Source of the DNA: Paragordius varius
Lineage: Eukaryota; Animalia; Nematomorpha
Direction: 5' to 3'
DNA: 64,000 nt
NCBI GenBank assembly: GCA_964247055.1
Contig: OZ176052.1
Location: forward strand, 11,594,001 to 11,658,000
In this document: positions 2,203 through 63,916 of the stretch, one piece after another
How the letters are laid out: the number at the start of each line of letters is the position of its first letter
Numbering within the stretch: position 1 is the first letter of the stretch
The notes under the pieces: generated by a model
The model's database searches: none
What the model saw: the letters and a program-made list of their open reading frames with translations, nothing else
Told to the model about the DNA's origin: nothing
Program-made: the position numbers and the translations under genes

Positions 2203-5200
2203 ATGAATACATCTCCATTATATAATAATCCAATGGCGCAACGGATTATTCATATCCATCAACTGAATTTTAGAGAAAACCTGGAAACAAAACTCTATCG
2301 TCTGGAAAAAGGTTTATATCTTGGAATCTTATATTATAGGATCGATTGTACATTTTCGTATGGGCCCATCATTGTTTGGAAAGCATATTCACTTGTATTG
2401 CAATCACCCACCCCTTAAATCAGAAGAAGAACTCACCGCTCAAAATGCAACAAATCAAAGCGAACGGAGTTTAGATGATCCCTTTTCAGAAAATTTTAAG
2501 CCATTTGAACGATCAAAATTTTATGAATTGGAATGGCATAAAGGATCTCGATATGATTGCGATGATACTGATTTGTACGCTGAATTAGAATTGGGAAGAA
2601 GTGGAACTTTTAGGTTTTTATTTTGTTTAATTATTCAATTAAGTTTAAATATATTTTAAAATATCATTTACCAAACATTATATGTTATAGATATTATTTT
2701 GTGGTATGCGATGCTGAACATAAAAAGCTGCACCCTCTCCTAAAGGACCGAGATTCTAATGAGTAACTTTAAATAACATTATATGTTTTAAATTATAATA
2801 TAAAAATTTCTAATTGATTTTATAAACAGTAAATAATAAAAAAGTTTATGAAAGATTTTGATTCCATGATTTGTTTTGCACAATTATTTAGTTTTATTTT
2901 ATATACTTCATCAATTTATAATCGAATAATTTATTTATTTTATATATAGACCCATACTATGTTGTACACGCGTTAAATGGATGGAACAGAGACGGGCCCA
3001 ATTATTGATGGCAGAATCAAATGATACACCCAAAAATGAAGAGAATACTAAAACACCAAACGCAGATAACTCTGGAGCATCGAAATCCAATTCAATTCAA
3101 CCGGATAGAAAGCATTCCTTGTTAGATTATGTGTCTGATCTTAAGGGTCTACCTCTTATCTATAGGTAGGACTTGGTCCATAACAATCTTTTTATTAGGA
3201 TATGGCTTCAAATATAATTATTTCAAAGATAAAACTGTATATATTTATTCAATAATTGTTAAATGCGATAAATATACAATTCAGAGTTTTTTAATTAAAA
3301 GTTTTAAGGCAAATTTAAAAAATGTCATATTTCATCTATTCAAACTGCACAAACCAATATCCATATTTATGTTATGCTCAAATTAAAACGCATTATAAAT
3401 TCATGTGTTCTATGTAACAGATTCCCCATGAGCGACCTACACGGCATCAGTGTCGAAGATTTTGAGGGCGATGGCTGTGGTTATTTTTTGGTTCCTCCAA
3501 CCCTGTTGGTTGGGCCTGAAAATGACCCGATGGAAGTTCTGCTAAATTCTTTGCGGTGTCAAACATTGTTGGCTAAATCTCTGGGCCGGTTTGATCAGTG
3601 GAAGGCTCGTGTGGCCGTTTCCTATCAATCCGGTTTTAATGCAATTCACTTGACCCCGGTTCAGGAACTGGGAATCTCCAACTCAGCCTACTGTATCAAA
3701 GATCATTTTAAACTCAATCCCGGATTCTACCTCCCTATCAATGCGTCGGCCAATCAAACGAGTATTACATTGTGTTATTAAGTTTGAATTCGTTTTTTTC
3801 TAGTTTGTATGTAAGTAATATGTGTTTTTCCAACATTTGATTTACACATCTTTTATTAAGCAAAGAAGATATTATTTGTTGAAAGAGTCCATAAATTAGT
3901 TTGTGGGCCAAAAAAAATAAAATATAAACCATTTTTTCATTTCTTTTTTAGTATACCTATTTAAACTTATGGTGTTGTTAATGTTTTTCAATACATCCTT
4001 ATTTAACAGTAAGAAGTCCTATTCTTGCTTAAATTGTATCGATATAAATGGAAACTCGTTTGTGTGTATATAAGTATTTTTTTGCTTTTGTTTTTTTTCT
4101 CCATTTCACAACTGATGGAAATGATTTATTTAATATGAGGCTGTTTCTACTGGATGTTATAGATTTATCGATAAGTAAAATGGCCTCCCCCAACGACAGT
4201 GAAATAAATTTGGTCAAACTCGGAGGGAATGGAAATGGAAAAGAGAATTTAAATTCTATGATACCATCCGAAGAAATGGACGCCGAAAATGATGATTTGA
4301 ATGCCGAACAATCTCCTGAAACCAAACGAGGTTTTGATTTGTAAATAATATGTATTTAATTTTATTTGAAATACAAACAATTTTATTTAATGATATCTGT
4401 TTTAGCATCCAGTGTTTTATAAAATTTTCTATATTATGTAGTGTTTGAGTAAAAAGGCTAATTGATGCCTTTAGTTGAATAAAATCCTTATATTTTAATC
4501 AAAAATAAGTGTGAAAGATAAATTGCTGAATGTTATCTCTTTTTTAATATCTTAATTTATATTAAAAAGTTTTCTATATAAATGGAAAATATGTTGACTA
4601 TAAATTATTACTCTTAATTAAAAAATGATGCATAAAATAAAAAAAATGCTCTTTTTGAAAATAAAAGATTTTTGGTAAATAATAATATCAATCTCTAAAA
4701 AATTAAATCTAACACATTGTAGTTTTATCACACATTTTTATATAATTTTTATAATTGATCTGATGATATTAGGTCGTTCGACAAGCCTTGCTCGCAGTAA
4801 TCGCCGTGTGGCCACCATGGAAGAGTTGGGGAAAATGATTGATTTCTTTAAAAGTCAATGGGGAATGCTTTCCATGCAAGATTTGGTGCTTAATCATGCT
4901 GCCACCAATTGTCAATGGATTTGGGAGCATCCAGAATGCGGGTATAATTTTTTAACTTTTTTTTGTCCTTAATTGATATACCATTTTTCAGTCGAAAGTA
5001 ACAACTTTTTAACTAACGCAATATTTACCATCCAAACGGAGGTAAAAATGTTGCATTTAATTGAAAAAGTTAGGATTTTGGATGAAAATGGTATAGCGAT
5101 TCGCAGTTTGCAGTTTATAATAAGGTATGAAAACTCAAATTTTTAAAAAAAATTGCTGGGTATTAAATTATACTTTTAGCTCCGCTAATTAAATACGCTA

Positions 5201-17200: not shown

Positions 17201-18552
17201 TATAATAACTTAATTAATTGTAATTATTACTAGGTAACGGTAACACAAAAGAAAGCATCGACAAACATTTGGGAAGCAAACAATGCTTTGGGTAGACTGC
17301 CTGAAAATTATGAATTATTGAAAACTAAACTAACTCGCATGTATCCTGCCGATGACTCCCCTCCCCAAGAACCGGGAAAATTTGTAACAAACTACAGTTT
17401 AAATAAAATTTAGCTTGCCTTACAAAATTTTTACAAAAAAAATTAATATGATAAGTTACAACATACATCACGGAATCTAATTTTTTGGTAAAGAGTCGAA
17501 ACTTTAATAGTAAAAAAATGACAATAATTATTTTAACTTGATCTTTTTTTAATACCTTAAATACGGGTTCGTTTGGTTAGTTTTAAAGAATATAAAAAAG
17601 TAAAATTGTAAAAATATATAGTTGACCTATTAATCTGAAGAACATTGTTTATGGGGATCTTTATTTGAAAAAATTTGCAATACAAATAATTGACATACAA
17701 TTGAATTAATTTTCGTTGATAGATGCAACCGTTGTGTGATATGATACATGAAAGTTTAACTAAACACGCTCAAGGCCTTAAATTTAGAGAGAGGAATGCA
17801 GGTCCCGCCATTGACAACAATATGTCTGATTTAGGTGGTTTTACATGTTATTTAATAATTGCGAATCTATTTATGAATTCTGGGGTATATATCTCACAAG
17901 TGTAATACTCTAGTTTTCTCAATAGCCTTCGCGGTATGCATTTTTTAAATAAACAGTACCGTAAAAATAATTTTTTATTTATGATTCGTATCAGGCTTTT
18001 TTAACATTTTTATATTGGTGTTATTTTTAATGTACAGTAGCTTAAAGTGGTTTGATGTTTTTACAAGCTATCATAATGAATGAATAATATTTTTTATCTA
18101 TATCAAAATTTTTAAATATTGTTTAAAATTAGTCCAGGAGTATAATGTTTCATTTCTTAGATATGGGGTTGGATGAGGGTTTAACTGTAATCGTTCGCGA
18201 TATAAATATTTTTTGTTATACTTTAAATAATATTTATTCCCTTAGGTTTCAATAACAGTATTGGAGTTGATTGGAAAACAGGATTTGTAATTGGAGGAAA
18301 TCAATATAATTGTGGAACATGGATGGATAAAATGGGAAGCTCTCAATTGGCTGGGAATAAAGGTGTTCCTGCTACCCCACGGTTATTTTTATATGTTATA
18401 CCACACGTTTTATTGTAAACGTATTATAAAATTTATCTGAAGTTTTAGTTAATGCGAATTATTTAATTTTATAAATGTAAAATAATACTGACGAATAATC
18501 TATAAATGTTAAAATGTTGAGGTACCTTCCATATATATATATATATATATAA

Positions 18553-18597
<45 letters not shown>

Positions 18598-21500
18598 GAT
18601 GTTTAAAAAGGCTATAATCTTGTAACAATATTATCGTTCTTAAAATTTCATATGTAATTTTATTTTTTAAATTATTATTTTTGTTTGAAGAGATGGGTCA
18701 GCCGTAGAAATCGTGGCTTTATGCAAAAGTGCTTTGAGATGGCTCATAAAAATGAAAGAACTTGGATTTTATCCTTATGACACGGTTAATCGAACAGATC
18801 CACTTTCTGCCGGTATGGTTTTACGTTCATTTTGTGAAAATAATTTAGAAAACAGATATTTTTCCGAATTAATTAAATTGTTTAAATATTGGCTAAGATA
18901 CGAAAAGAATCAATATTAATGATTAAAATTTTACCATCCAACTGGCTTCCGAACATTTTATGTTAACATTAAACAGCTTCATATGTCATTATCTCAATCA
19001 AAAGGGAATATTAAAACCACAGAATTTTTATTATAAAAAATAGTCAGTCGTCCAATTTTAAAAGCTGCTCATTTAATATAAAATAACTTTGATTTTGAGT
19101 CATTTACGCCTTATATTTTTATTATATTTTTAGAAGCCCAAAATTTAACAGCCAAAGACAAAACTATTACACTAAAGGCTTGGGATGAATTAATTTCCCA
19201 AAACTTTGAACGACATTACTGGATTCAACCGCTAGAAAAGTTTGTCCTTGAAGGCGAAGAAATTATCGATAATGATGGTCGTCGAAGACCCAGTGTTGGT
19301 ATATAAACCTTTAAAAAATCTTATTTTTTTGTTATATCAAAATTATTTTTTTACCTTTATTATGCATGGGTATATATATATATATATAAAATTGTAAATT
19401 TAAGTAATCATAGACATATTAGTCGTTTTGTTCAAATATACTTATACCTTACATCTTAATTATAAGATAATATGAATTGTACATGCACATGGGTAAAATT
19501 TGTAATATAATCATTTACAAAAGTTACAGAATTTCACATTTCAATAATGTAAATGTGATATTTGGCTATCCTAATGCGAAAAAAATAATTTATTATCAAA
19601 TCAACTAGATGTCATCATTTATTTCCTCATAAATTTCCATAATTAATAACGACAATTTATTTATAGTAACTCAGGATCCAAGTAAACTGCCATCCTCACC
19701 CCTTCCCATACGTGAACTCGTTAAAAAGGACGATGGTGCGTGCATTTGTGCAGATGATGTTGAATCCAACAAATATATAAATCGCAGAGCAATCTATAAG
19801 GATACTCATGGCTCCAGTCAACCATGGACCGATTATCAATTGAGATGCAATTTCCCTGTTGCTATGGTCGTTGTAAGAGCTCTCTATTCCAATTTTATAC
19901 ATGTTTTTTAGAGTTTTTTAAGGTCGTTTATTGTATATAGTCAAACTTTTTTATGCGTTCTTTTTTGTAAGTAACCCCTTTTTATTTTTTTAAAAAGCTA
20001 TTATATTTCTTAACCTAATTGTGTATTTTTTGTTGACAATGATCCTTCTGTATAAATTAAGTTTTAAGGGAGACTCAAATACATTTATTATGACGCATTT
20101 TTAATTAAAAGTGTTTATTTATATTTTGTGAATATTGTATATTTATATTTGTTTGTTTATTCTCATTTAAGGCACCCGAATTATTTAACTCCGAAAACGC
20201 TTGGAAAGCTTTGAAAATAGTTGAAGATGTTCTTTTAGGCCCTCTGGGGATAAAGACGCTTGACCCATCGTAAGATAATCGAACTTTAGTTATATATACC
20301 ATTTACAGTTCAAATTCACCCTTGAATTTAAATTTACCCTTGAACAATTCAAATTCACCCACTAACAATTTAAATTCACCCTTAAACAATTTAAATTCAC
20401 CCTAAAAATTAATTATGTGTTTTCGAACTAAAATAACTCATTATTAATAAGAAATATATCTTTGTGGCATAGTTTATTATTTTTTCAGTATTATTTTAAT
20501 TTAAAACAAAATATTTTATTTTTTAAAAATATATAAAAATATTGGTAATTTTTATTCTAAAAACATATATTTTATTTGAGGGTGAATTTGAATTGTTTAA
20601 GGGTGAATTTGAATTGTTCAAGGGTGAATTTGAATTGTTCAAAGGTGAATTTGAATTGTTCAAGGGTGAATTTGTTTAAAGGTGAATTTGAATTGTTTAA
20701 GGGTGAATTTGAATTATAAATGGTATATTAACTAACATTGAAACAGTAGCAACAATAAAAAAATTTAAGTTTTAACTTGTAAAATATCGATTTTCTAATA
20801 TAAATTCTTTTACAGGCTTGTTTTTATATCTTTGTATAAACGGGTCTACAATTTTTAATTTATGCTTCATGTATATTTATATTTTATTTTAATTCTTAAG
20901 GGATTGGGCTTACAACGGATTCTATGATAATGACAATAATTCTAATGATTACAAAATTGCTCATGGATTTAATTACCATCAAGGGCCGGTAACACTTTTT
21001 CTATTTTTATACACAATTTCAATTGTAAAAATAAATATCTCAATGTTCGCTTAGGAATGGTTATGGCCAGTCGGATATTTTTATCGTGCAAAATTGTATT
21101 TTGCACAAAAGTTACAAAAAACGGATCCACATTTATATGTGCACACCATACATTGGATTAAGGAAAAATTGGCACCCCATTATGAGGTTTGAATGTCATT
21201 AAAATATTTAAACTATACCTTTATAATAATACGCATTAAAAATGGGAAAGACGGGAACCTAGAATTTTATATGTGTAAAATTCAATACTAAATATCCGTC
21301 ATTTTCTCCAAATATTATCATATTTTTTATATAACTTATGTGATTTGAGTAATTTTTCATTAACCTAATTATATATGTAGAAAGAGAAATCAAGAAAAAA
21401 AATAGAATGTATTGATTACCTTATAAAGTTACAGTTTAGACCACTTTCCACATTTTATATCATTTTATACAGATTTGTTTTTATAAAATAAATGAACTAT

Positions 21501-31078: not shown

Positions 31079-34000
31079 ATGAAACTTCTTAACGGGATTG
31101 ATATTATGTCTCCCATCTACAAATCCATCAATCTCAACGGAAGTCACCAGGTATTTTTGTCATTAATTAAATTTTTGTTAGAAATTTTTAATTTCTCGAA
31201 AAGAATTTGGTAGTAAGGAAAGTGCTTATGTAAAAAATCATGGTGTATAGATTTTTGTAAAAATTATTTTTATAATAATAATAATGATGATGTTAAAATG
31301 CGAAAAATCAATAAAAATGTTTGCCCAGTACTAGGCGCACCACATCACAAATTAAACTTAAATATCCATATGATTTTTATGTATTTAGGAAAACTCCTCT
31401 TCCTTATTTCTTGCTCTTTTATAAATCTCTATTTTTCCAAAAAAACAGACTGAGCACTCTTGTATTTTTATTTTAAAAATACAGACTTTTCGGGAAAAAA
31501 ACGTTATTTACTCCTATGTATTTCTAATATTTATATTTGTACCCATGTACACAAACAACTTGATTTTTAGCAGAATTCTAACCTTTTTGGCGATGGAAAT
31601 TTTTTGAAAACTCAAAAATCACATTTGGCTACCACAACAAGTAACACTATCAAAGCCCTACAATCCATTAACCATAACATAAATTTGCACAAACAAATTA
31701 ATTTGCGAAATCCTTTTCATCATGTTTCCGAAAACAATTATAATAATTTAAACAAGAAATTCCAAAATGGTATATCAAGAACCAATGAACCAAATAACAA
31801 AACTTCGACTTCTACCACAGCGTTTAGGATGCGTCACTATGATTCTCGAAATGGCCTGTTAAACAATGGTAATGTCATTAGGGCCCCGATATCAACGAAT
31901 ACAGAAATAAACGAAACATTTTCACACAAAATTCATAATAATTATAAAGTTACAAGTGTTAATTCAAGCATAATTTCTAATAATATAAATGATAGTATAC
32001 AAAATTTTAAGGATAATATTGATCCACATTCCAATACTAAAGGCAAAAAGGTACAAATATCACAAAACACGCCAGATGTCATAGGCTTCGGTGGCCAAGA
32101 ATGGTTTTTTGTTACACATCATTACAACAATGACACCATCACAAATGAAAATATAACTAATAATTTCGAAACGACAGATTCCTTGTTTCTGAATAATCAA
32201 AATAATTTGCTTAAAAATAAGCACCCTTTCTCTCAAGTTCAAGGAACAGAGTTTATTGAAAAAAATTCTAATCGATCCAATAATGACGATTGCAGCGATG
32301 ATGATTTGAGTTTTTTGTCGTCAGATCCAACCCTTACACCTGATGAAATTGGTGAATGGCGAAAACGTATATACCAAACTCTCATAAATACGGAATTTAA
32401 TGCCATATCCAAAAATCTTTCATCTGACGCTATTCCATTTTCTTCATTTAAGGATACAAATCAAAATACCATCGTCAACAACACTTCTGCAACAACTAAT
32501 CTATTAGATTCAAACTCTATTTTATCGCAGGCTCATACCGATTTTACCCAATTTCTTTCTGATTCCTTTGGACAGGCAGAAGGAATCTCAAATTCAAGAA
32601 ATATATTTCAACCATTAGAAACTAATTTGTATCCCATAACACAAAACGAAACAATTCAAACCTCTTCGCCAAGTCCAAAAACGATGCCATCTGAAGAACA
32701 ACTTTCTCCAACAAATTTACACATGGTCAAAAATAAAAAAGATGGTAAAAATTTTGGATGGTTCAAAAAATCTAATCCTCCTCCATCAGAAAAGAAACTA
32801 TCTGAAAACTTTTGTGACACTAATGCTGGTTTGAAGGAAGATATCATGCCTTCATTTGATTGTTTAAATCGTTCACCTTCACCTCCACTTCTTGATCTAA
32901 ATTGTGATTTAATGAGCGAATTTTCAAAATATTTTTCGGATTTGTCTACCTTTAACGATACAGCAACCAACGAAAAAATTATAGACAACCATCATGATAA
33001 TAATAATGATACGGAACATTCTTCGACAGGCTTGTTGCAAGAAATAGATGAGACTTTTAAAAAGAGCGTAATATCAGACTCATTACCGAATGATAATCAA
33101 AGAGAAAAGGAATCAAAACCTTTATCCAATCAACAAGCTCTTAGGGAGAACGGGATGGATGCGACAGCAGCAGACCAACAACAGTCAAACAAACATAACA
33201 ATAAAGATTTTAAAGTTGATGAAAACGTGAAATTCCATCAAAGCCCAACGATTATTCCCGTAACACCTATTGCTGAACCGTCCCCACTGTACGAAGAATT
33301 AGACTGCAATCAACACAATCAAACGATTAAAAACCATGCTCATAATACCGTATTCCATTCATCAAATGCTTCACCATTGTTATCCTCTAATCATGTTTCA
33401 AATAACAGAATTGATTTGCGAGAATCTCCTTTCGAACCAAACAACACTTCAAAAGGAAGTTCAATATCATCATTTTCAGATGATTTAGATGTGATTCCCC
33501 AACCTGCCCGAAAAAATTCGCTTGTAAATAATTTGTTGAACAGGTCAATTTTCAAACATGTCACCTCATCCCCACAAAACAATAATTCGAAAAACGATGC
33601 AGATAAAAACGATACTATTGTATCACGAAAAAATGCGAACGACGTCAAAAAACTGGATATCGTTCATATGTTTGATCCATCTCTCGAAGACAATGCCACG
33701 CATAATTCTACTGAAACTAAAACGCCCGAAAAATTGTGTCATTCTGAGTTACCCGCCAGGAAAGCGATTCAAAATTTTTGTGAAAAAAAGGAAGGAAAAA
33801 ATGGCCAAACCTCTTTCTTAGATTTGATGAATAAGAAGAGTTTTGCTTCTCGGCAACGCATAATAAAATTTGATTCCAAATTAGCAACCATAGCCCAAAC
33901 ACTTAATCAAAACAATTCAGATTCCAACATATCTTTGTCGGAGCATTCACACAATGAAGTTATTAGTAAAACCCAAATTAATATAAAAGATCAATCTACC

Positions 34001-36703
34001 ATGGGTAATGAACTTCAATCCAATCTTCTCAATAATTTTCATGAGAACATTCCAGCTACTTTTGATGTGAAGCCAATAACAAATTCGCAACCGATAGCCA
34101 CGCATAAATCAGCGTCAATGAGCCATACAGATATCTCTAAACTTGAATTTAAAGACATGTTTTCTCTACAAGAGAAGAAAGATTATTCCGATGATTTAGA
34201 CATTTCCAAAGATCATATGCGATCAAATACCAAGCCAAATCGGTCTAAAAGTTTGGATAAAACATCACTTCTTGCAAACTTGCATAATTCAAATAAGTTA
34301 TGTCCTAATGCTAACACCCTTTTACCATCCCAACACATTGCATCTGAAGTTACGAGTCTTATTTCAACGCCTTGTGCAGAAAATAACCATGAATTTAATG
34401 ATTCAATACCATCATTCCTTCACAGTTCAACTCGCACTTTAAATTTCCACACAGGATTTATGGACTCTAAAAAAAGTCGCATCGCACACAACAATATAAA
34501 TATTAATTTTAACAATTTTAAAAGGCATAGTACCCAATCATTTAATGACAAATTTTTTTCGCTAAAAAATTTTTTCCGTAAACCTAATTCTGGAAATGGT
34601 AATGGACACTCTTCAAAAAACGTAAGGTCTAGTTTTGGTCCAATTTTAAAAAATGTTTTGTTAAATCATAGTCGTACAGATTCTACGACAAATATTAATT
34701 TAACTGTAAAATCTGTGCAATCTAAATGTGATACGACCGATTATAATAATAATACAACTCGACACCATTTAGCCAAAGATTTATTTAATCCCAATAATAG
34801 CAAACATAACTCAAACAGAATGAATGGCGACGTAAGCGACAAAACAAAAAGCACCCTCGATGCGAATCTCCTTAACATTCCCACAGCATTGTCCATAACA
34901 TCGGCCATGGATTCGTTTAGCAGTGGTGGAGATTCGAGTAATTTTAGTAATAATGAAAGTGACGAAAATTGGAGCTCAAATTCTTCCGTTAAACCCACCA
35001 AAACGCAAATTAATGGTCATCACACTAGAAACTCTCAACCCGCTATGGATAATACAAATTCGATCGTGGATACTACACAAAATTTATATCAAAACACACC
35101 GACTTTAACCCATAAAACATTGGTGTCTGACAGCATTACCAATAACAATAATAGTTGGATGGAAAAAGATTCATCTGTACCCCCACCCCTACCCGAACGA
35201 AAAATTATGCCACATCTGGAACCACACAAATTTGAGGAGATTAAAAACACTGTAATAACTATAGAAGAATGTAAACCTATTATACCTGCTATTCAGCTAA
35301 TACCCCTACCCCCAATTCCAGAGCGCTCTAATAAGATTGCAAAATCTACAACACAAAATTCCAACGTTAAAACTATTGGCAATCAGAAAAAACCAATCGT
35401 AAATGAATCGTCTCTAATGATGCCAGCGAACTACAATACATCCTCATCTTCTGAGGTAAAAACGACTTAATTGTATTATTATTAAATCTAATTTATTTAA
35501 CCTGTAAACATGGAGAACACTATTTGTATCAAACAATTGAAATTTATGATAAATATTTAATTTTTTATGATAATCCAAGTGCTTTATTACAATAAATATT
35601 TGTATTGTGGTTCGAATCATAAAATTTTTATGACTTTTTTATTATTATAATTTTAACAATTTTTTAATATATATATATATATGTATATATATATATTGTA
35701 TTTGCTTAAGCATTTCTCGTCTGGAGATGGAACAAATTTCATAAATAGTAATAGCAAAGGGAAAGAAAGGAATTCTTTGATGGCAAACCATGCCGCCGGC
35801 ATTCGAGGAAGCAATCGAAATATTTCAAAGCCAAAAGTTCCCCCACCTAAACCACCTCCTCAATCAAATAAATCCTGTGATCCTGTAAAAGTATATAAAC
35901 GTACTTTTATGCGTTATTTTTTTATGAGAGCGCTCCTAAGTTATAATAAAATAGGTTGCGTCATTTAGAAGTTTGATTAAATTTATTTTTTATTACGACT
36001 ATTCTTTGATCCAAATATGGTTTTAAATTATAAACAGTCTTATAAACAATTATATTAGATTCCACCGCGCGAACAACTCGTCAAGAGCAAAGATGAGCGT
36101 TCAATTGTAATTTCGAATATAAAGAAAAAGCCGACGATACCGAGTAAACCTCCAAAACTTTGTGCTAAAGGAAAAGGTTTTTTTACGAGATATTTCTTTG
36201 AAAAGTGATCTAGAGTTATTTCATTCAATATAGACATATAAATTTGTGCAATATTATGCAATACAGTAAAATCTCCAGAACATCGTGTGAACGTCGTCCC
36301 TTTAACTGATATAGTCGCCCAAATTTCGACATTAAAGCCCATAGAACCTGTGGAGAATTTTTCAACACAAAATGGATGTAATCCGTCTCCTAATCAAGGT
36401 ATGATGGAAGAGTATGAGGCTTATTTAACTCCAATCATTGATACAACCGCTATGGAAAGGCCAAATTTAACATCCACTGATTGTTGCAATAATTTAATTA
36501 AACCAAACCCGATGGAAAAAAATATAGCTGTTACTAAGCACCACACACCTCTCTTTAAAGAGAGCCCACTTAAGGAAAAATGTACGAAAACTGTGTTAGC
36601 TGAAACTAGCAATATTATAGTTTTGGAGGAGGATCAAAGGAAACTTATTATGGCCGGTTTAAAACCGAGTGAAATTAAGCAAAAACTTAAATTAAAAAAA
36701 TAA
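31079..36703 (+). CDS. Uncharacterised ~1563-aa Asn/Ser/Thr-rich, probably disordered protein with several PxxP motifs; 5 exons including a 3885-nt exon
   Basis: Exons 31079-31150, 31571-35455, 35711-35890, 36059-36176, 36267-36703 (4692 nt, in phase). A 3.9-kb stop-free frame in AT-rich DNA cannot be chance. Motifs PPPLPERK, PLPPIPER, VPPPKPPP, PTIPSKPPK. No globular domain recognised; the first exon is the least certain. Confidence 0.85.
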
Positions 36704-45791: not shown

Positions 45792-47012
45792 GTTTTGTTT
45801 ATTTTAACATATTTTAATTCATATTCATTTCTATATATAATGAAAACGATAAGTATTCACAATTGACAAACTTAAATTATAAAGAGAAATTTACACCTTG
45901 CAAAAAAGTTTTTCAAATATCATTAAAATAATTATATATTTCACCCACTCAAGCTGTGCTCAGCGCGATAAGTGCGGAATAATCTAAATTACTTATTAAT
46001 TTATATATAAAAAAATATTTTTTAAAGATTTGATGAAAAATTATGAAAAAAATACGCTTGACAATTGTAATTATATTTTATAGATAAAATACTTTACTTA
46101 CTTATTACCTATATATTCTATTAGGATTGAAAAGGAGATTACTTTTATTATTATAATTTAACCAGACCAACAAATTTTATTAATAAAAAGTTTAAATTTG
46201 AAGAATAGAAATAAGCTGTTTCGAAAACGTTTCATACGAGTGAATGGATAATATTGTGGGTTCTTTGCAAATTATTTCTGCATAGGTGTTGAAATAATAT
46301 TAATCTAAAACTTTTTGTGTTCATTGAATTGGAAAATGTATCATCTAATATAAAATTTCAAAATTATGCCAAAATAATTTAAAATATTGTCAAGGTTTCA
46401 TGATTTTTAGATACGGTTACTAAGAAACGAATGTTTGGTTTTAAGTTACTTTTTATAGAAAGCCATGGATATTAATGAGACATACTTCACAAATAATGTT
46501 TAATATGGACTTCAATCTTGGAGGCAATTATTTTTTCTTTCTCCAAATCCACCTGAAAATGTTTTTATTTTCTGTCTGATGATATTTCCCCCTTTTGAAA
46601 TTTTATCCTTGTTGGCGATAAATTATTGTAAATAATAGATCAGTTGTGGTTATTTTGTGTTATTACCCCCTGAAATGATGAATTAACAGATTAAAATATA
46701 TGTAATACCATATTCCAAATAATGACACAATTTAAATCTTACCATATTTCATAATTATATCATGACTAAAAAAAATGTTAAATATTTGTGTTTTCATACA
46801 AGAGAAATAGAATATCGATAAAATATAAAAACTAAAACATTCAATCCACAATTACTAACTGAACAGTTATGGTTTGAATTTTTTGTCGCTATAAATCCAT
46901 TTTATGCAAGTTTTTTAAACTTTATATTCCATTTTTTAAAAACAACTTTTTATTTCAAACGAAAAGCATTACTAAACACCATAAATTTATTGTGTGTGTG
47001 TTTCGGGCATAG

Positions 47013-47375
47013 ATTGAGTACGAAAAAAGCATATCTGCCGCCACCACCACAGTACTTAAACGTCCAAAATCCAGAGTCGAAACTCCCATTTCTCCCCGCT
47101 TACCAAGGAGTCCTAAGAGGGTTAAAACCCGACGATCTCCAGCTAAAACGGTTCAGGATTCTCTTGAAGAATTCGAACCAGAGCAGGGAGAAGAATTAGA
47201 CATTGATGAAGGCTATGAAATGACAGCAAAAGAAAAACGCGAATCGGAAAAGCTATTGGCGCAAAGGCAAGAAATGTTGGCAAAACTCCTGGAAATCGAT
47301 GAACGTCGTCATAAATTGAAGGAAGCCATCAAAGCTAAACAACGATCGCAGCAAGGCAAAGTGTTTTCACTTTGA
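47013..47375 (+). CDS. Terminal coding exon missed by the ORF track: basic SP-rich segment, acidic patch, coiled coil
   Basis: After the GGCATAG acceptor: IEYEKSISAATTTVLKRPKSRVETPISPRLPRSPKRVKTRRSPAKTVQDSLEEFEPEQGEELDIDEGYEMTAKEKRESEKLLAQRQEMLAKLLEIDERRHKLKEAIKAKQRSQQGKVFSL-stop. GC-enriched and protein-like. Linkage to 44934-45791 is unproven. Confidence 0.7.
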   Translation: MEYEKSISAATTTVLKRPKSRVETPISPRLPRSPKRVKTRRSPAKTVQDSLEEFEPEQGEELDIDEGYEMTAKEKRESEKLLAQRQEMLAKLLEIDERRHKLKEAIKAKQRSQQGKVFSL

Positions 47376-47446
47376 ATTATAAATATATTACCGCATCATA
47401 TTTGGATTGCAATAATATATTAGTGAATATAATTAGTTAATATATA

Positions 47447-47711
47447 CCATTTTCAGTACAAATTTATTCTTCAACAATTAAAATTTACCCTCGAACAATT
47501 CAAATTCATCCTAAAATAAATTATGTGGTCTTTAAAATTAAAAATTAGCTATATTATTTTATATTTTTATGAAATGAAATTGAAATTTTGTTTAAAATTT
47601 ATATAATACTGAAAAAATAATAAATTATCCCATAAGTATATTTTATATTAATGATGAGTTATATTAGCCCGAAATCACATAATCTCTTTTTAGGGTGAAT
47701 TTGAATTGTAA
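47447..47711. mobile_element. Degenerate subtype A foldback MITE, inverted relative to 20299-20723, right end eroded
   Basis: TATA|CCATTTTCAGTACAAATTT start and remnants of the GGGTGAATTTGAATTG unit. The spacer's reverse complement aligns with the 20400-20580 spacer (for example TTTATTATTTTTTCAGTATTAT). Confidence 0.8.
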
Positions 47712-47719
47712 TATATATA

Positions 47720-49245
47720 CCATTTTTCATGCAAAAACATCATTTTTTCAAGCAAACGCACCATTTTTTCAAGCAAACGCAACATTTTTTCAAGCAAAGG
47801 CAACAATTTTTCAAGCAAATGCAACATTTTTTCAACCAAAGACAACATTTTTTCAAGCAAACGCAACATTTTTTCAAGCAAACGCAACATTTTTTCATCC
47901 AAACGCAACATTTTTTCATCCAAACGCAACATTTTTTCAACCAAAGACAACATTTTTTCAAGCAAAAACAACACTTTTTTATAATATTACAAAGAATTAT
48001 TATTTATTGTTAATTATAAATTATTTATTAAATTTTAAGTAAATGTAAATTATTTTTAGCGTTGAATTATGATTTTTATCGTTTTATCATCAATATTTGA
48101 TGGTAAAATTGATTTTCAAATATTTTGAATTCATAAATTGCCTTATTTATTTATATTAATTATATTTTTCTTTTACAATTTTGGTTTCGCCTAATCAAAT
48201 TATTTAATTTGCACTTCAAGAGTGTCTTTGAAAGTTTAAAGTTGTCCTTCACTTCAAGTTGGTCCTTTGACTTTTTTGTTTTGTTTTTAACTTTTATCAA
48301 TTAAATCGAAAATAATTTATCTATTTTATTGTTTTTAACCTATTTTCTATTATTTAACATAATTTTTAATCGATATCATCTTTTAATCCTTGAGAAACCG
48401 TATATTAATTTCTTAAAATAATTTTAGATATTTATAACACGAAAAAAAATATATGAGTTTTCTGGGTTATTAAAAAATTTTCATTAAAAACATTAAAAGT
48501 TAATAATTTTGTTCAATTAAAAAAATATTTTGAAACAAAAAAGTGGTTTTAAAAATTTTTATTTTTAAATGGATAAATATATAATAAATAAAGAAAATTA
48601 GGTTAATAAATAATAATATATATTAAAAAATAAATGCAAAAATTAGGGTAAAACAAAATTTATATATTTTAAGGACCAACTTAAAGAGTTCAAGGACCAA
48701 CTGGAAATGTTCAAGGACCAACTTGAAGTGTTCAAGGACACTGTTGAAGTGCAAATTAAATAATTTGATTAGGCGAAACCAAAATTGTAAAAGAAAAATA
48801 TAATTAATATAAATAAATAAGGCAATTTATGGGCAAATTCAAAATATTTGAAAATCAATTTTACCATCAAATATTGATGATAAAACGATAAAAATCATAA
48901 TTCAACGCTAAAAATAAATTACATTTACTTAAAATTTAATAAATAATTTATAATTAACAATAAATAATAATTCTTTGTAATATTATAAAAAAGTGTTGTT
49001 TTTGCTTGAAAAAATGTTGTCTTTGGTTGAAAAAATGTTGCGTTTGGATGAAAAAATGTTGCGTTTGTTTGAAAAAATGTTGCGTTTGCTTGAAAAAATG
49101 TTGCGTTTGCTTGAAAAAATGTTGTCTTTGCTTGAAAAAATGTTGCATTTGCTTGAAAAATTGTTGCCTTTGCTTGAAAAAATGTTGCGTTTGCTTGAAA
49201 AAATGGTGCGTTTGCTTGAAAAAATGATGTTTTTGCATGAAAAAT

Positions 49246-49247
<2 letters not shown>
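47720..49247. mobile_element. 1528-bp foldback element (CCATTT family, subtype B): ~550-bp near-identical inverted arms, two kinds of 21-bp arrays, ~400-bp spacer, no transposase
   Basis: TATA|CCATTTTTCATGCAAAAAC ... GTTTTTGCATGAAAAATGG|TATA. Twelve outer units (AAAAAATGTTGCGTTTGCTTG) per arm; inner units CAAGGACCAACTTGAAGTGTT at ~48670-48750 with degenerate mirror copies at ~48210-48270. Confidence 0.92.

Positions 49248-49339
<92 letters not shown>
49248..49339. repeat. (TA)46 microsatellite directly abutting the foldback's right end
   Basis: 92-nt perfect run. Confidence 0.95.
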
Positions 49340-49340
<1 letters not shown>

Positions 49341-51148
49341 CTTGTCAATGCAAATTAATAAATTATTAATTATCGAATGGCAAAAGTTTTAATATGATGT
49401 TGCTTTAGGTTTATTTTTATTTTATGATATTTTCCGTTTAGACTTTTAAAGCAATATGCATCCCTAATCTAATTAACATAGTAGTTTTGCATCCCAGGCC
49501 GATTTTAAATTTGAATGTATTAAAATGTAATTTGGGGCAAATTGAATATTTGCATACTTGAGCATTTTAGGTGCCTGATTCGAAAAGAAATAAAATTAAA
49601 AAATTCTCAACTCAAACTTCTCCGATTTTTATTGGCTTTTAGAAATAATACAACATTAAATGTATATTATCGTTAAATATTATATTGAGGTTTTCAAATT
49701 ACATGTTATTAATTTTAATATCATCTATTCGTCTAAATCGGGTTTTGTAATACAATTTAGGACTTTAGTTAATAAATTGCAAAAAATTGAACTTCTATTT
49801 TAACCCACTAAACATTAAAACAGTAATGATTTAATAGTTAAACTCTGCGATAAACTACCCAATATCGACTGCATAAAAAGGTAATATAATGCGATATGTA
49901 AATTAACATATTAAAATTAAATGTCATCAAATAAATCTATATAATGAAATTAAAACAAATATCATTAAAAGAATTAACAAGATAAATTTCTATATATTAA
50001 CAAATTATCAAGTTTTTTAAATTTTTCACGCTTAAACAAGCTTCCCGGTTGCATTATACATAAATTTTTTGTTTCGCTAATATATAAGTAACGATCACTA
50101 TTATAGGCCAATTTATATTTTGAAAAAAGCTAAAGGTGATATACATATCAGTAGTTTATTAGCTACATTTTTGAAAGTTGCGGAGAAAGAAATTAAAAAC
50201 TAATATAAAATAAATAATTCATATATGGCCAGATATGAATATTAACTACCTTTATACAGTAGCGTATGGAGCAAAACAATATTAGTCCATAAAAGAATAA
50301 AAAAATGTAAAATACAGATAATAGTTCTCCTTTGTTTATTAAATTATATGAACACCAACCTATCAATTAGATAGGGGAAAGGGAGGAAGATACATTTATT
50401 GACTGATACTTTACTATATTTATGTGGTTTGGTTAATACAAACAACATATTTGTGTTTTCAAAGGTGTTTTAACCAATTTGGCAAATGGATAAAACAATA
50501 TTATTATTTTTTTTGAAATTCTAAAGGTATAGTTTCTATGAATGGGCTCTAGCGGTATTCTGTAAAAAATAATTTGTAAATTATTGGTCTGAATATTTAT
50601 AATTAATTTAAAGATTCAAGGAGGTAAAGCCATATAAATGAAAAACAGTGACGCCTAAAAAATTATTTAATTTACTCATAAAGATTTAATTTATTATAAC
50701 TTTTCAGAATTTTTAGACCAAATATTTTGATTTCAGCCTCTGTTAACATTATATTTAAAAATTTGATTGATTTTACTTTTATTTTTTTTGTTTTCAAACA
50801 TTATGAAAAGTACATCTACAGGCGCACGTGCAAATTTATCGGTATAAAAGGAGAATAAATTTCCATTCCAGATGTGCACAACCATCTTGATCGTATCGAG
50901 TAAACAGGAATGTACAATTATAAAATAAAATACATAAGGGCAGTTTGCATGCTATTAATGAATAAAATAAATATGTATGGGAGCACATAAGGAAACTTAG
51001 AAAAAAAAAGATGATTAACTCAAACTCTATCTTGTGAGAAAATCAGTTTAGAAAGTTTGCATTTTTTATTTTTATCGTATTAAACATTTCTTTAATTCTG
51101 TTTGATTGAAAATAAATATTTTTTTATTTACCCGACCAAATTAATTTT

Positions 51149-61498: not shown

Positions 61499-63916
61499 AA
61501 TTCTAGTAAAATAATATCCCATTTTGATCAATTGGGTACGTATCGATATAGACTAGATGATGATAATAAAAATGCGACTCAACATATCGTTCATCAAACT
61601 TTTAATCAACACAATTATTCTCGGGTCGATCCAAAAGTAAGTTGTGCATTTATGATTTTATTCAAGTAATATTAATGAATAAATTAAAAAAAAAAGAAAT
61701 TACTAAGAAACAATGATTATTAATTCAGACAATATTATTTAAAACATATATTCAATGTATAACTTTGATATAAAGGATAGGTATGAGGTTGTCGACGGTT
61801 TATTTCTTTATAAAAATGGGTTTTACATAAATCTTCAAATATTTTTATCCCTTATTGCCACATTTAATAATAAAAACATTTAGAACCAAACACAGTAATA
61901 TTTCAATGATTTGGTTTTGTGCGTTCCTTACACAAATGCCTAATTCGGCTTTGTGGGTATATCAAAGTTTTACAACTAGCTGCATTGTTGTAATAAAATT
62001 TTTACTCATGAAAAAAGCATTCGTTAGGATTTAACTGGGGATAGGGGTTGAAAAATTGATCTAATCGCATACGATACAAGATCATTTGGGAAACAAAGGT
62101 AATTTTCTTCTAAAAAAATTCGAGCCACTTAAAGGATCCTATTTTGATTTCAAAATTGATGATCCCCTCAACTCCTATCATACAAATGTGTGATACGTTT
62201 TTTCCCCACAATATATATGCGCTAAACCATTTGAAAACTTTCTGCGGCAGAAAATTGTCCTAAAGGTGCGTATCCAATATTTTTGATTCTTCCTGACAAA
62301 TTTTCTCCTGTTGTGTTTAAGGCGTATTAGAAGCGCGTTTCATATCGCTTCGAATAACTAGCAAAGAAATTCTTTCTCTCAGTTCTAAAATGCACTTTTT
62401 ACGGGTTATATTTATTTCAGTATTTTACGCATTGTAGGTTTTAAAATCTTTGGAGGATCTGGTATTTTATTCAATTGATCATTAATCGTGGTTTTACTGG
62501 CATTTTAAATGGTTTCAAGTTAAATCAAGATACCCAAATCTGGAAATTTTTAATACCCAAAACCATATTCCGGCTAAATTTATTAACCCGATAGTTTTTC
62601 ATTTTCCAGAGGATTAGAAAATACTCTATATGCCTTGTATTTTTTTCTTTCGCCCAAAATTCATAAACTTTATTATAAAAAATGCTGGCTAACTGGCATA
62701 TATAGAGGAACGTATCATTCCTATGTATGATAGGAGTTGAGGGAATCATTAATTTCGAAATCAAATCGAGATTATTGAAGCGGTAACTCCTTCAAATTTT
62801 GCTTGGGGCTTTTTTTACCCCCAGTTAAACGCTATTAAATGTTTTTTTACCCCCCCCCCCCCCCCCCCAGTTAAAATCTATAAATTGTTTTTGACAAATT
62901 CATATTTTATCTCCAAAAAGACCACTCCATTGTTATAACTATGATAGATCAATATATCCAATTAAGACGTTTGTGTGAGGAAATACAAGACAAAATCAAT
63001 GAAAAATTATTTTGGTTTTTCTAATTCTATTTTAATAAAATAGTTGCCTTAAAAAAACTAAAAAATGAAAATAATTAACAACTTTTTAAAAAATTTTATC
63101 GTTCCTCCCAGAATTGGCGGTACTTTATAATTTTTTACTGGGAATTAGTTTTTCTAAAACGCTTTCATTTTTTGCCCTTTTCATCTTACTGCATTATACT
63201 ATGTGATGTTTTTTGTTATCACAATAGGTAAATCATACCATACAAATCAAATTACCGAATGAAGAAGAATACGTTGTTATAGCCAAATATGTTCAAGATA
63301 AATATCCAGGTTTCACAGTTAACATTGATATTGATGAGGGAAAAGGACACATCATAGGAAAGTTTAAGTTGGATTACTGCCCAAACTTATCGGGTTGTTA
63401 TGTTCTCCTTAAAGATTCAGACCTTAAATGGGTCTTTGAATTGCCGAAAGAATTCAATCTAACCATATATCATCATACTCCCTATCTGTTTTGGCTGGTA
63501 TATAATTGCTTGCATACATAACTTAATTTTTTAAATATACAAGTTTAACATTTTATGATAAATATATTTGTGTTGTTTGTAGAACAATATAATTCTCATG
63601 CCCAAAGATGTATACCAAAACAATTGGTTAGTTAATACACAACCAATTGACCAAACTGTCAAATTTATTGAAAGGTGTACAAACATTTTTATCGAGAATG
63701 ATACGAACACATTGATGGACCCATTTTGTCAAAAGGCCATGTTTTCGCTCTCCACCGATTTTAATACAGGGGCACTGCAATGCGATTGCGATAACCGCGG
63801 ATCTATCAGTTATAGCTGTAACCCTGTGGGCGGACAATGCCAATGTAAAGCCAATATAATTGGTCGGACTTGTTCCCGCTGTAAATCGGGATACTATGGA
63901 TTCCCTAATTGCCAAA
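51149..63916 (+). CDS. LAMA5: Laminin subunit alpha, alpha-3/5 (LanA/epi-1) type; first 20 exons, continues beyond the window
   Basis: Exons 51149-51739, 52924-53160, 53609-53789, 54109-54322, 54677-54886, 55160-55267, 55372-55536, 56009-56284, 56733-56867, 57155-57289, 57651-57815, 58028-58186, 58511-58770, 59225-59698, 60010-60297, 60522-60691, 60829-61218, 61552-61636, 63228-63497, 63583-63916. Signal peptide; LN domain ([62 protein letters not shown]); tandem LE repeats; the long alpha-3/5-type globular domain (RFELEDG, YSWRGYA); then further LE repeats. Confidence 0.96.
52320..52585 (+). mobile_element. hAT-like non-autonomous element with the best-preserved 3' end, in laminin intron 1
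   Basis: GTGGCCCGCGAAGCTATATTTGTGTTGGACACCCCTG; homologous to the copies at 38441 and 42309. Confidence 0.65.
53214..53245. repeat. (TA)n microsatellite in laminin intron 2
   Basis: Direct reading. Confidence 0.9.
61465..61494. repeat. (AT)15 microsatellite preceded by a short (CA)n, in laminin intron 17
   Basis: Direct reading. Confidence 0.9.
62810..62876. repeat. Local duplication of TTTTTACCCCCAGTTAAA with the C-run expanded to C19 in the second copy
   Basis: Direct reading at 62811-62828 and 62843-62875. Confidence 0.75.

Follow-up and report, generated by a model that had tools for sequence, protein, structure and literature searches.

Evidence for an abundant group of non-autonomous foldback elements with CCATTT tips and tandem 21-bp modules in the nematomorph Paragordius varius

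MITEs that are flanked by TA and fold back over their whole length have been documented, and template switching was proposed as the origin of MITEs with long terminal inverted repeats (TIRs) or a hairpin structure (PMC3814204). TIRs composed of tandem subrepeats are known from Galileo (PMC3573991) and Tetris (PMC4079207), and the subrepeats of Tetris and FB can expand into satellite DNA (PMC4079207, PMC3573991). The TA-flanked foldback MITE, the TIR of tandem subrepeats, and the growth of subrepeats into satellites are already known. Here, four elements were analysed in a stretch of 64,000 nucleotides (the window) from Paragordius varius (Nematomorpha), which covers positions 11,594,001 to 11,658,000 on the forward strand of contig OZ176052.1 (GenBank assembly GCA_964247055.1). 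These elements, designated E1 to E4, were compared with the closest described systems.

The families PALTA1_CE, PALTA2_CE and PALTA4_CE of Caenorhabditis elegans (Repbase names, PMC3814204), compared by description only, are likewise small, non-coding, nearly total foldbacks, TA-flanked and high-copy, and also belong to an ecdysozoan worm. Goblin and other long-TIR MITEs of Aedes aegypti (PMC3814204) offer a parallel in template switching during gap repair, which fits the 500-bp arms of E4 (about 99% identical, with a sharp inner boundary); the Goblin TIR is 54 bp, against 500 bp for the arms of E4, and its autonomous parent is known (Ozma). The Drosophila element FB, Galileo (P superfamily), and Tetris share the long TIRs of tandem subrepeats and the variable arm length; whereas their tips and unit lengths are different. 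The target duplications of Galileo and FB are 7-9 bp long (9 bp in FB), in contrast to the TA or TATA found here. To our knowledge, neither a CCATTT tip nor 21-bp tandem arrays have been reported for the PALTA families.

The Tc1/mariner elements of the IR/DR kind (Sleeping Beauty, Tc3, Bari3 and Paris) use a TA target, and their long TIRs contain repeated transposase-binding sites, the outermost of which holds the cleavage tip. However, there are two or three spaced sites per TIR in these elements, whereas up to 12 copies stand head to tail here; and their tips are typically CAGT... instead of CCATTT. We know of no Tc1/mariner transposase that has been linked to CCATTT ends. In the piggyBac-type MITEs the tips are likewise CC...GG, and the junction again shows a 4-bp palindrome of A and T only, but this palindrome is TTAA rather than TATA. 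No description of a CCATTT-tipped family was found in the literature, and the literature reached on nematomorph transposable elements consisted of automated annotation only (10.1101/2024.06.11.598342). Judged on the literature rather than on Dfam or Repbase, the CCATTT-tipped family is likely undescribed, and represents a known kind of element.

Direct reading of the window showed that all four elements open with CCATTT immediately behind TATA, and the four starts given in an earlier sequence-only reading of this DNA (4981, 20299, 47447 and 47720) were read as stated. The right end (AAATGG followed by TATA) is present in three of the four elements, E1, E2 and E4, as had also been claimed. E1 (4981-5091, 111 bp) is a degenerate mini foldback MITE of type A, with TATA at 4977-4980 and 5092-5095. 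E2 (20299-20723, 425 bp) is a foldback MITE of type B with TATA on both sides, and its 21-bp arrays occupy 20305-20403 and 20575-20715. E3 (47447-47711) is also of type B, and has three units on the left and the terminal unit only on the right. The right tip of E3 is 4 nt short (without ATGG) and ends at 47711; it is followed by TATATATA (47712-47719) and then by E4. The last TA or TATA of this gap is the left copy of the target duplication of E4, and the first TA or TATA of a perfect (TA)46 microsatellite at 49248-49339 is the right copy. E4 itself (47720-49247, 1528 bp) is a composite foldback element, and with E1 it marks the size span of 111 to 1528 bp that was reported earlier. The tip loss of E3 at 47706-47719 could be due to erosion by the TA tract, or be the scar of an aborted excision. 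Further (AT)n tracts are located at 18531, 24795, 35667, 53214 and 61465, and TA-targeting elements might be connected with TA microsatellites.

The 10-mer TATACCATTT was matched nine times on both strands of the window (1.06 expected), a count that was reached by none of 100 shuffles; and seven of the nine matches are element ends. The single strand of E2 folds into one hairpin of -101.8 kcal/mol (z-score -13.8), and E1 also folds as one hairpin (z-score -3.1). All four elements are inverted repeats (foldback) without coding capacity, in line with the earlier statement that none of them encodes a transposase. E4 has no real ORF; its sole ORFs are low-complexity frames running across the arrays. 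For the 94-aa array ORF of E4, no match was obtained in a word-index protein search and an exact-protein look-up; an exact look-up of a host exon ORF likewise gave none. No transposase was evident among the 125 stop-to-stop frames of at least 70 aa in the window, which were mostly judged by eye; ten of these frames, picked as host-gene candidates, were run through Pfam, and seven showed host-gene domains while three had no match. The features of MITEs were found in these elements, including TIRs, short flanking TATA, lack of a real ORF, and high copy number with varied flanks; the 1528 bp of E4 exceed the usual 800-bp limit for MITEs.

The window has about 28% G+C and contains animal genes, including a glycogen debranching enzyme gene (roughly 2.3-21.2 kb), a BTB/BACK/Kelch gene, a galactosyltransferase-like exon, and a laminin gene. 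Introns of the debranching enzyme gene hold E1 (40 bp in) and E2 (28 bp in), and E3 and E4 are located just past the stop codon of an ORF. An open frame of about 1300 codons at 31571-35467, which is very rich in Asn, Ser and Thr and is probably a large low-complexity exon of a host gene, contains one chance match to TATACCATTT. An inverted-repeat element unrelated to the CCATTT group is also present in the window (62125-62783, about 660 bp); it has 75-nt arms at 80%, and TTAA immediately precedes the left arm. Another dispersed repeat lies at 50228-50378, where the contig depth is about 400 times that of the neighbouring sequence; it has neither the CCATTT tip nor 21-bp units.

Contigs of four public runs were aligned to positions 46000-50500 at a likeness of at least 85%. 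The depth summed over contigs, which represents a contrast in repetition and not a copy number, was 10^2 to 3x10^3 times higher in the elements than in the unique flanks (runs X2, X4 and X5); in X2 it was about 1.7x10^6 over E3 and the C region, about 9x10^4 over the private spacer of E4, and about 6x10^2 over the flanks. This shows high repetition, E4-type composites included; in the read contigs, the repetition of the spacer at 47981-48206 is of the order of 100-fold, again as summed depth and not as a true copy number. For the B-type start, 86-102 contigs per run align from 47474 on, and the consensus of the loose ends before this position finishes with ...TATA(TA)CCATTT. These contigs are other B copies, in which the tip abuts a unit, TATA and CCATTT lying immediately ahead of the second B unit. 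For the C-type end, 126-145 contigs per run align up to 48756 and continue with GG followed by TATAT..., so that an intact canonical C-type end can be read from them as ...GTGCAAATGG followed by TATA (...GCAAATGG followed by TATAT past the C units). The flanks of these B and C contigs are AT-rich and agree at only 0.5-0.6; therefore, the copies represent many separate insertion sites. Short A-type foldbacks elsewhere are shown by joints such as 47788>49075, which contain various inserts of 12-39 nt. The sequence-only reading had named a failure to find further copies with the same ends as a reason to abandon the family, and about 100 contigs per run were found to carry other copies.

These contigs also bear on whether the elements are mobile at all. 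If they were only local palindromic tandem repeats, or assembly artefacts sharing a few letters, one would expect neither that ends and units recur at four sites, within two gene contexts that are unrelated, nor thousands of contigs from independent runs with unrelated flanks and sharply defined ends. Moreover, contigs identical to the reference extend across the left junction of E3 in two runs (X1 record 2 and X2 record 14). Such a reading could appeal to the facts that no clean empty site was seen in the run contigs over 46000-50500 and that no transposase was observed in the window; however, it is effectively refuted by the run contigs, and its probability is close to nil. E1 to E4 very probably belong to an abundant group of non-autonomous foldback MITEs, which move by cut-and-paste with a putative transposase acting in trans.

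Two contigs that represent a diverged haplotype, X4 record 20 and X5 record 26, match the reference up to 47446, the base before the CCATTT of E3; past this position they carry 26 letters unlike E3, and (TA)n comes next. This is suggestive of a site without E3, and perhaps without E4, on the diverged haplotype, and polymorphism is possible. The two haplotypes are about 5% apart and differ by many small indels (46000-47400 and 49400-50500); both were seen in S2, and only the non-reference haplotype in S3. This divergence represents either very high heterozygosity or a mix of lineages. Run X1, which is labelled organism A, contains low-depth 151-nt contigs that are identical to the reference over 47114-47529, including the left junction of E3. 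These contigs fit DNA of Paragordius varius in a sample of another species, for example a parasite's host.

A period of 21 was called by TRF in three of the elements, with 12.2 copies per arm in E4 (90% matches), 4.9 and 7.0 copies in E2, and 2.2 copies in E3; a third unit with 3.3 copies was called within E4. In the window, unit A has 23 matches (0.02 expected), unit B has 14 (0.18 expected), and unit C has four (0 expected). Each type combines a terminal 21-mer with an array unit. These are CCATTTTTCATGCAAAAACAT and CATTTTTTCAAGCAAACGCAA in type A (E4 arms, degenerate in E1), with an in-register identity of 15/21; CCATTTACAGTTCAAATTCAC and CCTTGAACAATTCAAATTCAC in type B (E2 and E3), with 17/21; and CCATTTGCACTTCAACAGTGT and CCTTGAACACTTCAAGTTGGT in type C (inside E4), with 13/21. 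Since the terminal 21-mer corresponds to the first array unit in register, the arrays arose by amplification of the terminal module in tandem. Inheritance from this module is the simplest explanation for the 21-bp period, rather than three separate inventions.

The sequence-only reading had reported 21-bp units in the inverted arms of all four elements, with three different unit sequences. The first part applies to E2, E3 and E4; whereas the units of E1 are degenerate, as a single unit (5048-5068) matches the A consensus with 3 mismatches or fewer and no array was called by TRF. The left terminal 21-mer of E1 is 15/21 identical to that of E4. As to the second part, there are indeed three sequences, but they are not independent, and are better described as one terminal module amplified in each lineage. 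Units B and C are identical at 16/21 positions, and both types have a similar inner junction (CCTAAAA...ATTATG); on these sequence comparisons, B and C are sister lineages. The palindrome TTGAA-N3-TTCAA occurs in each B and C unit (20345-20404, 20578-20716 and 48671-48733), and is lacking in the A unit. It might serve as a dimer-binding site or as a hairpin seed.

The A unit has no significant similarity to B (10/21) or C (6/21) in register, and past CCATTT the A tip has just a loose motif in common with the other types. The extended shared tip motif CCATTTNCANNNCAAA was not clearly enriched in the window (four matches against 1.38 expected, with four reached by 8 of 100 shuffles). Many MITE families with similar TIRs can also share one genome (PMC3814204). 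These observations would suit a reading in which A and B/C are separate families with different, possibly related transposases, and in which CCATTT and the 21-bp period were shared through descent within a superfamily or through convergence. However, all types agree fully in their first 6 nt, flank and period, the terminal 21-mers are 12-13/21 identical across them, and the left tip of E1 (CCATTTTTCAGT...) is intermediate between A and B. Separate families are considered somewhat unlikely. Three module lineages occur in the window, with A in the arms of E4 and in E1, B in E2 and E3, and C in the core of E4; one transposase for all three types, the 'system' of the sequence-only reading, is conjectural.

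E4 is a composite, in which A-type arms surround a presumably dead C-type foldback. The left A-type array (47720-47980, + strand) begins with the terminal 21-mer CCATTTTTCATGCAAAAACAT and continues with 11 units of the consensus CATTTTTTCAAGCAAACGCAA, and the right A-type array (48987-49247, - strand) is its mirror, in which 2 units differ. The left AT-rich spacer (47981-48206, + strand) is mirrored at 48757-48986, with a 4-nt insertion there at 48832-48835. Between the spacers is the inner C-type foldback (48207-48756); its C units, CCTTGAACACTTCAAGTTGGT in register, occupy 48671-48756 and, in degenerate form, 48207-48267. The arms of E4 are complementary over 421 nt at 99% and over 113 nt at 95%. 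Alignment of the outer 500 nt (47720-48219 vs 48744-49247) showed 4 substitutions and one 4-nt indel (about 99% identity), and the arm identity drops abruptly from 99% to 76% and lower at 48219/48744. The inner C-type tips are TAATTT, not CCATTT, and both read TAATTTGCAC... against the canonical CCATTTGCAC.... Because both tips are non-canonical, the inner C-type foldback is presumably immobile. E4 is probably a young composite, in which 500-bp A-type arms of about 99% identity enclose an older C foldback with ruined tips.

Each of the seven intact ends found in the window is flanked by full TATA, and TATA likewise stands beside both kinds of tip in the consensus drawn, in each run, from about 100 copies elsewhere. 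A duplication of 3 bp or of 5-9 bp, or of ATAT with shifted ends, fails at E1 and E2. Since the direct repeats of 3 bp and 5-9 bp fail, the duplication is TA or TATA; the sequence-only reading had left the choice between these two, and the present copies fit both lengths. Several superfamilies were rejected on their target duplications. For the Drosophila Foldback (FB) group, its trait of long TIRs with tandem subrepeats is present, but E1 and E2 show no direct repeat that exceeds 4 bp, and the FB duplication is 9 bp. The likeness to foldback elements that was drawn earlier thus extends to the architecture and the tandem-repeat TIRs, and not to membership of the FB group. The 7-8-bp duplication of the P superfamily (Galileo-like) fails at E1 and E2 as well. 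For PIF/Harbinger, the left flank ends with ATA and the right flank starts with TAT, which gives no 3-bp direct repeat (TWA). For piggyBac, every junction is TATA and none is TTAA; and no local TTAA-flanked elements with CCC tips related to the CCATTT group were found in the window. The duplications of Sola2 are AWWT (PMC3627910); here the duplication would be TATA, and a one-base shift to ATAT fails, as the right side of E1 is ATAG. Exact-pattern searches with unit A in metagenome contigs, and with unit B in contigs of viral and prokaryote genomes, returned no arrays and just two isolated hits due to chance.

On balance, we lean slightly towards a partner of the Tc1/mariner type that duplicates TA and prefers ATATATAT-like sites. 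This combination predicts the observed flanks, and Sleeping Beauty reportedly prefers ATATATAT-like sites. The genome is rich in TA (72% A+T, full of (TA)n), and E4 is located at the (TA)46 tract. At the inner C site of E4 (...ATTATT-TA-[tip]...[tip]-TA-AATAAT...), a perfect palindrome is restored if the duplication comprised TA alone; the damaged tips at this site make the evidence weak. A genuine TATA duplication of 4 bp would place the elements outside Tc1/mariner, for example in a piggyBac-like lineage acting on TATA, or in an unnamed one. It explains the full TATA at the seven window ends more simply than a site preference does, and the consensus of the run copies is in line with it. The CCATTT tip also resembles the CCC(T/A)... 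tips of piggyBac elements. However, we know of no superfamily that is defined by a TATA duplication, as Sola2 has AWWT and both piggyBac and Kolobok have TTAA. Moreover, the TA duplication with a ATATATAT preference gives the same flanks in a genome of this composition, and the palindrome of the inner C site, with the caveat of its damaged tips, also speaks for TA. A true TATA duplication is regarded as unlikely. A more specific proposal is that a strict TATA duplication of 4 bp is made at CCATTT elements by a novel transposase lineage, such as a piggyBac-like enzyme retargeted from TTAA to TATA, which reads a diversified 21-bp module with a fixed cleavage tip; this is improbable.

For the favoured reading, a non-autonomous group mobilized in trans, the following mechanism may be proposed. 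Each end opens with CCATTT, and its first 21-nt module is present in 2 to 12 tandem copies, which makes arrays of the TIRs. The 21-nt module might be the binding site of the transposase, with CCATTT as the cleavage tip; and the 21-bp spacing, equal to two helical turns, would set all copies on one face of the DNA. Insertion would take place at TA where the surrounding sequence is TATA or ATATAT. Growth (and shrinkage) of the arrays most likely comes from slippage or unequal exchange; the long identical arms most likely result from copying of one arm onto the other in double-strand-break repair, by template switching or inverted-repeat extension.

The CCATTT group may rank among the most abundant DNA-transposon groups of a little-studied and very AT-rich animal genome. 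With the putative cleavage tip inside the first of the serial 21-bp modules, the TIR looks like an amplified, putative binding site. The strong hairpins in introns and next to genes matter for annotation, for the production of dsRNA or small RNA, and for genome instability. If the duplication turns out to be TATA, real interest would attach to the partner transposase.
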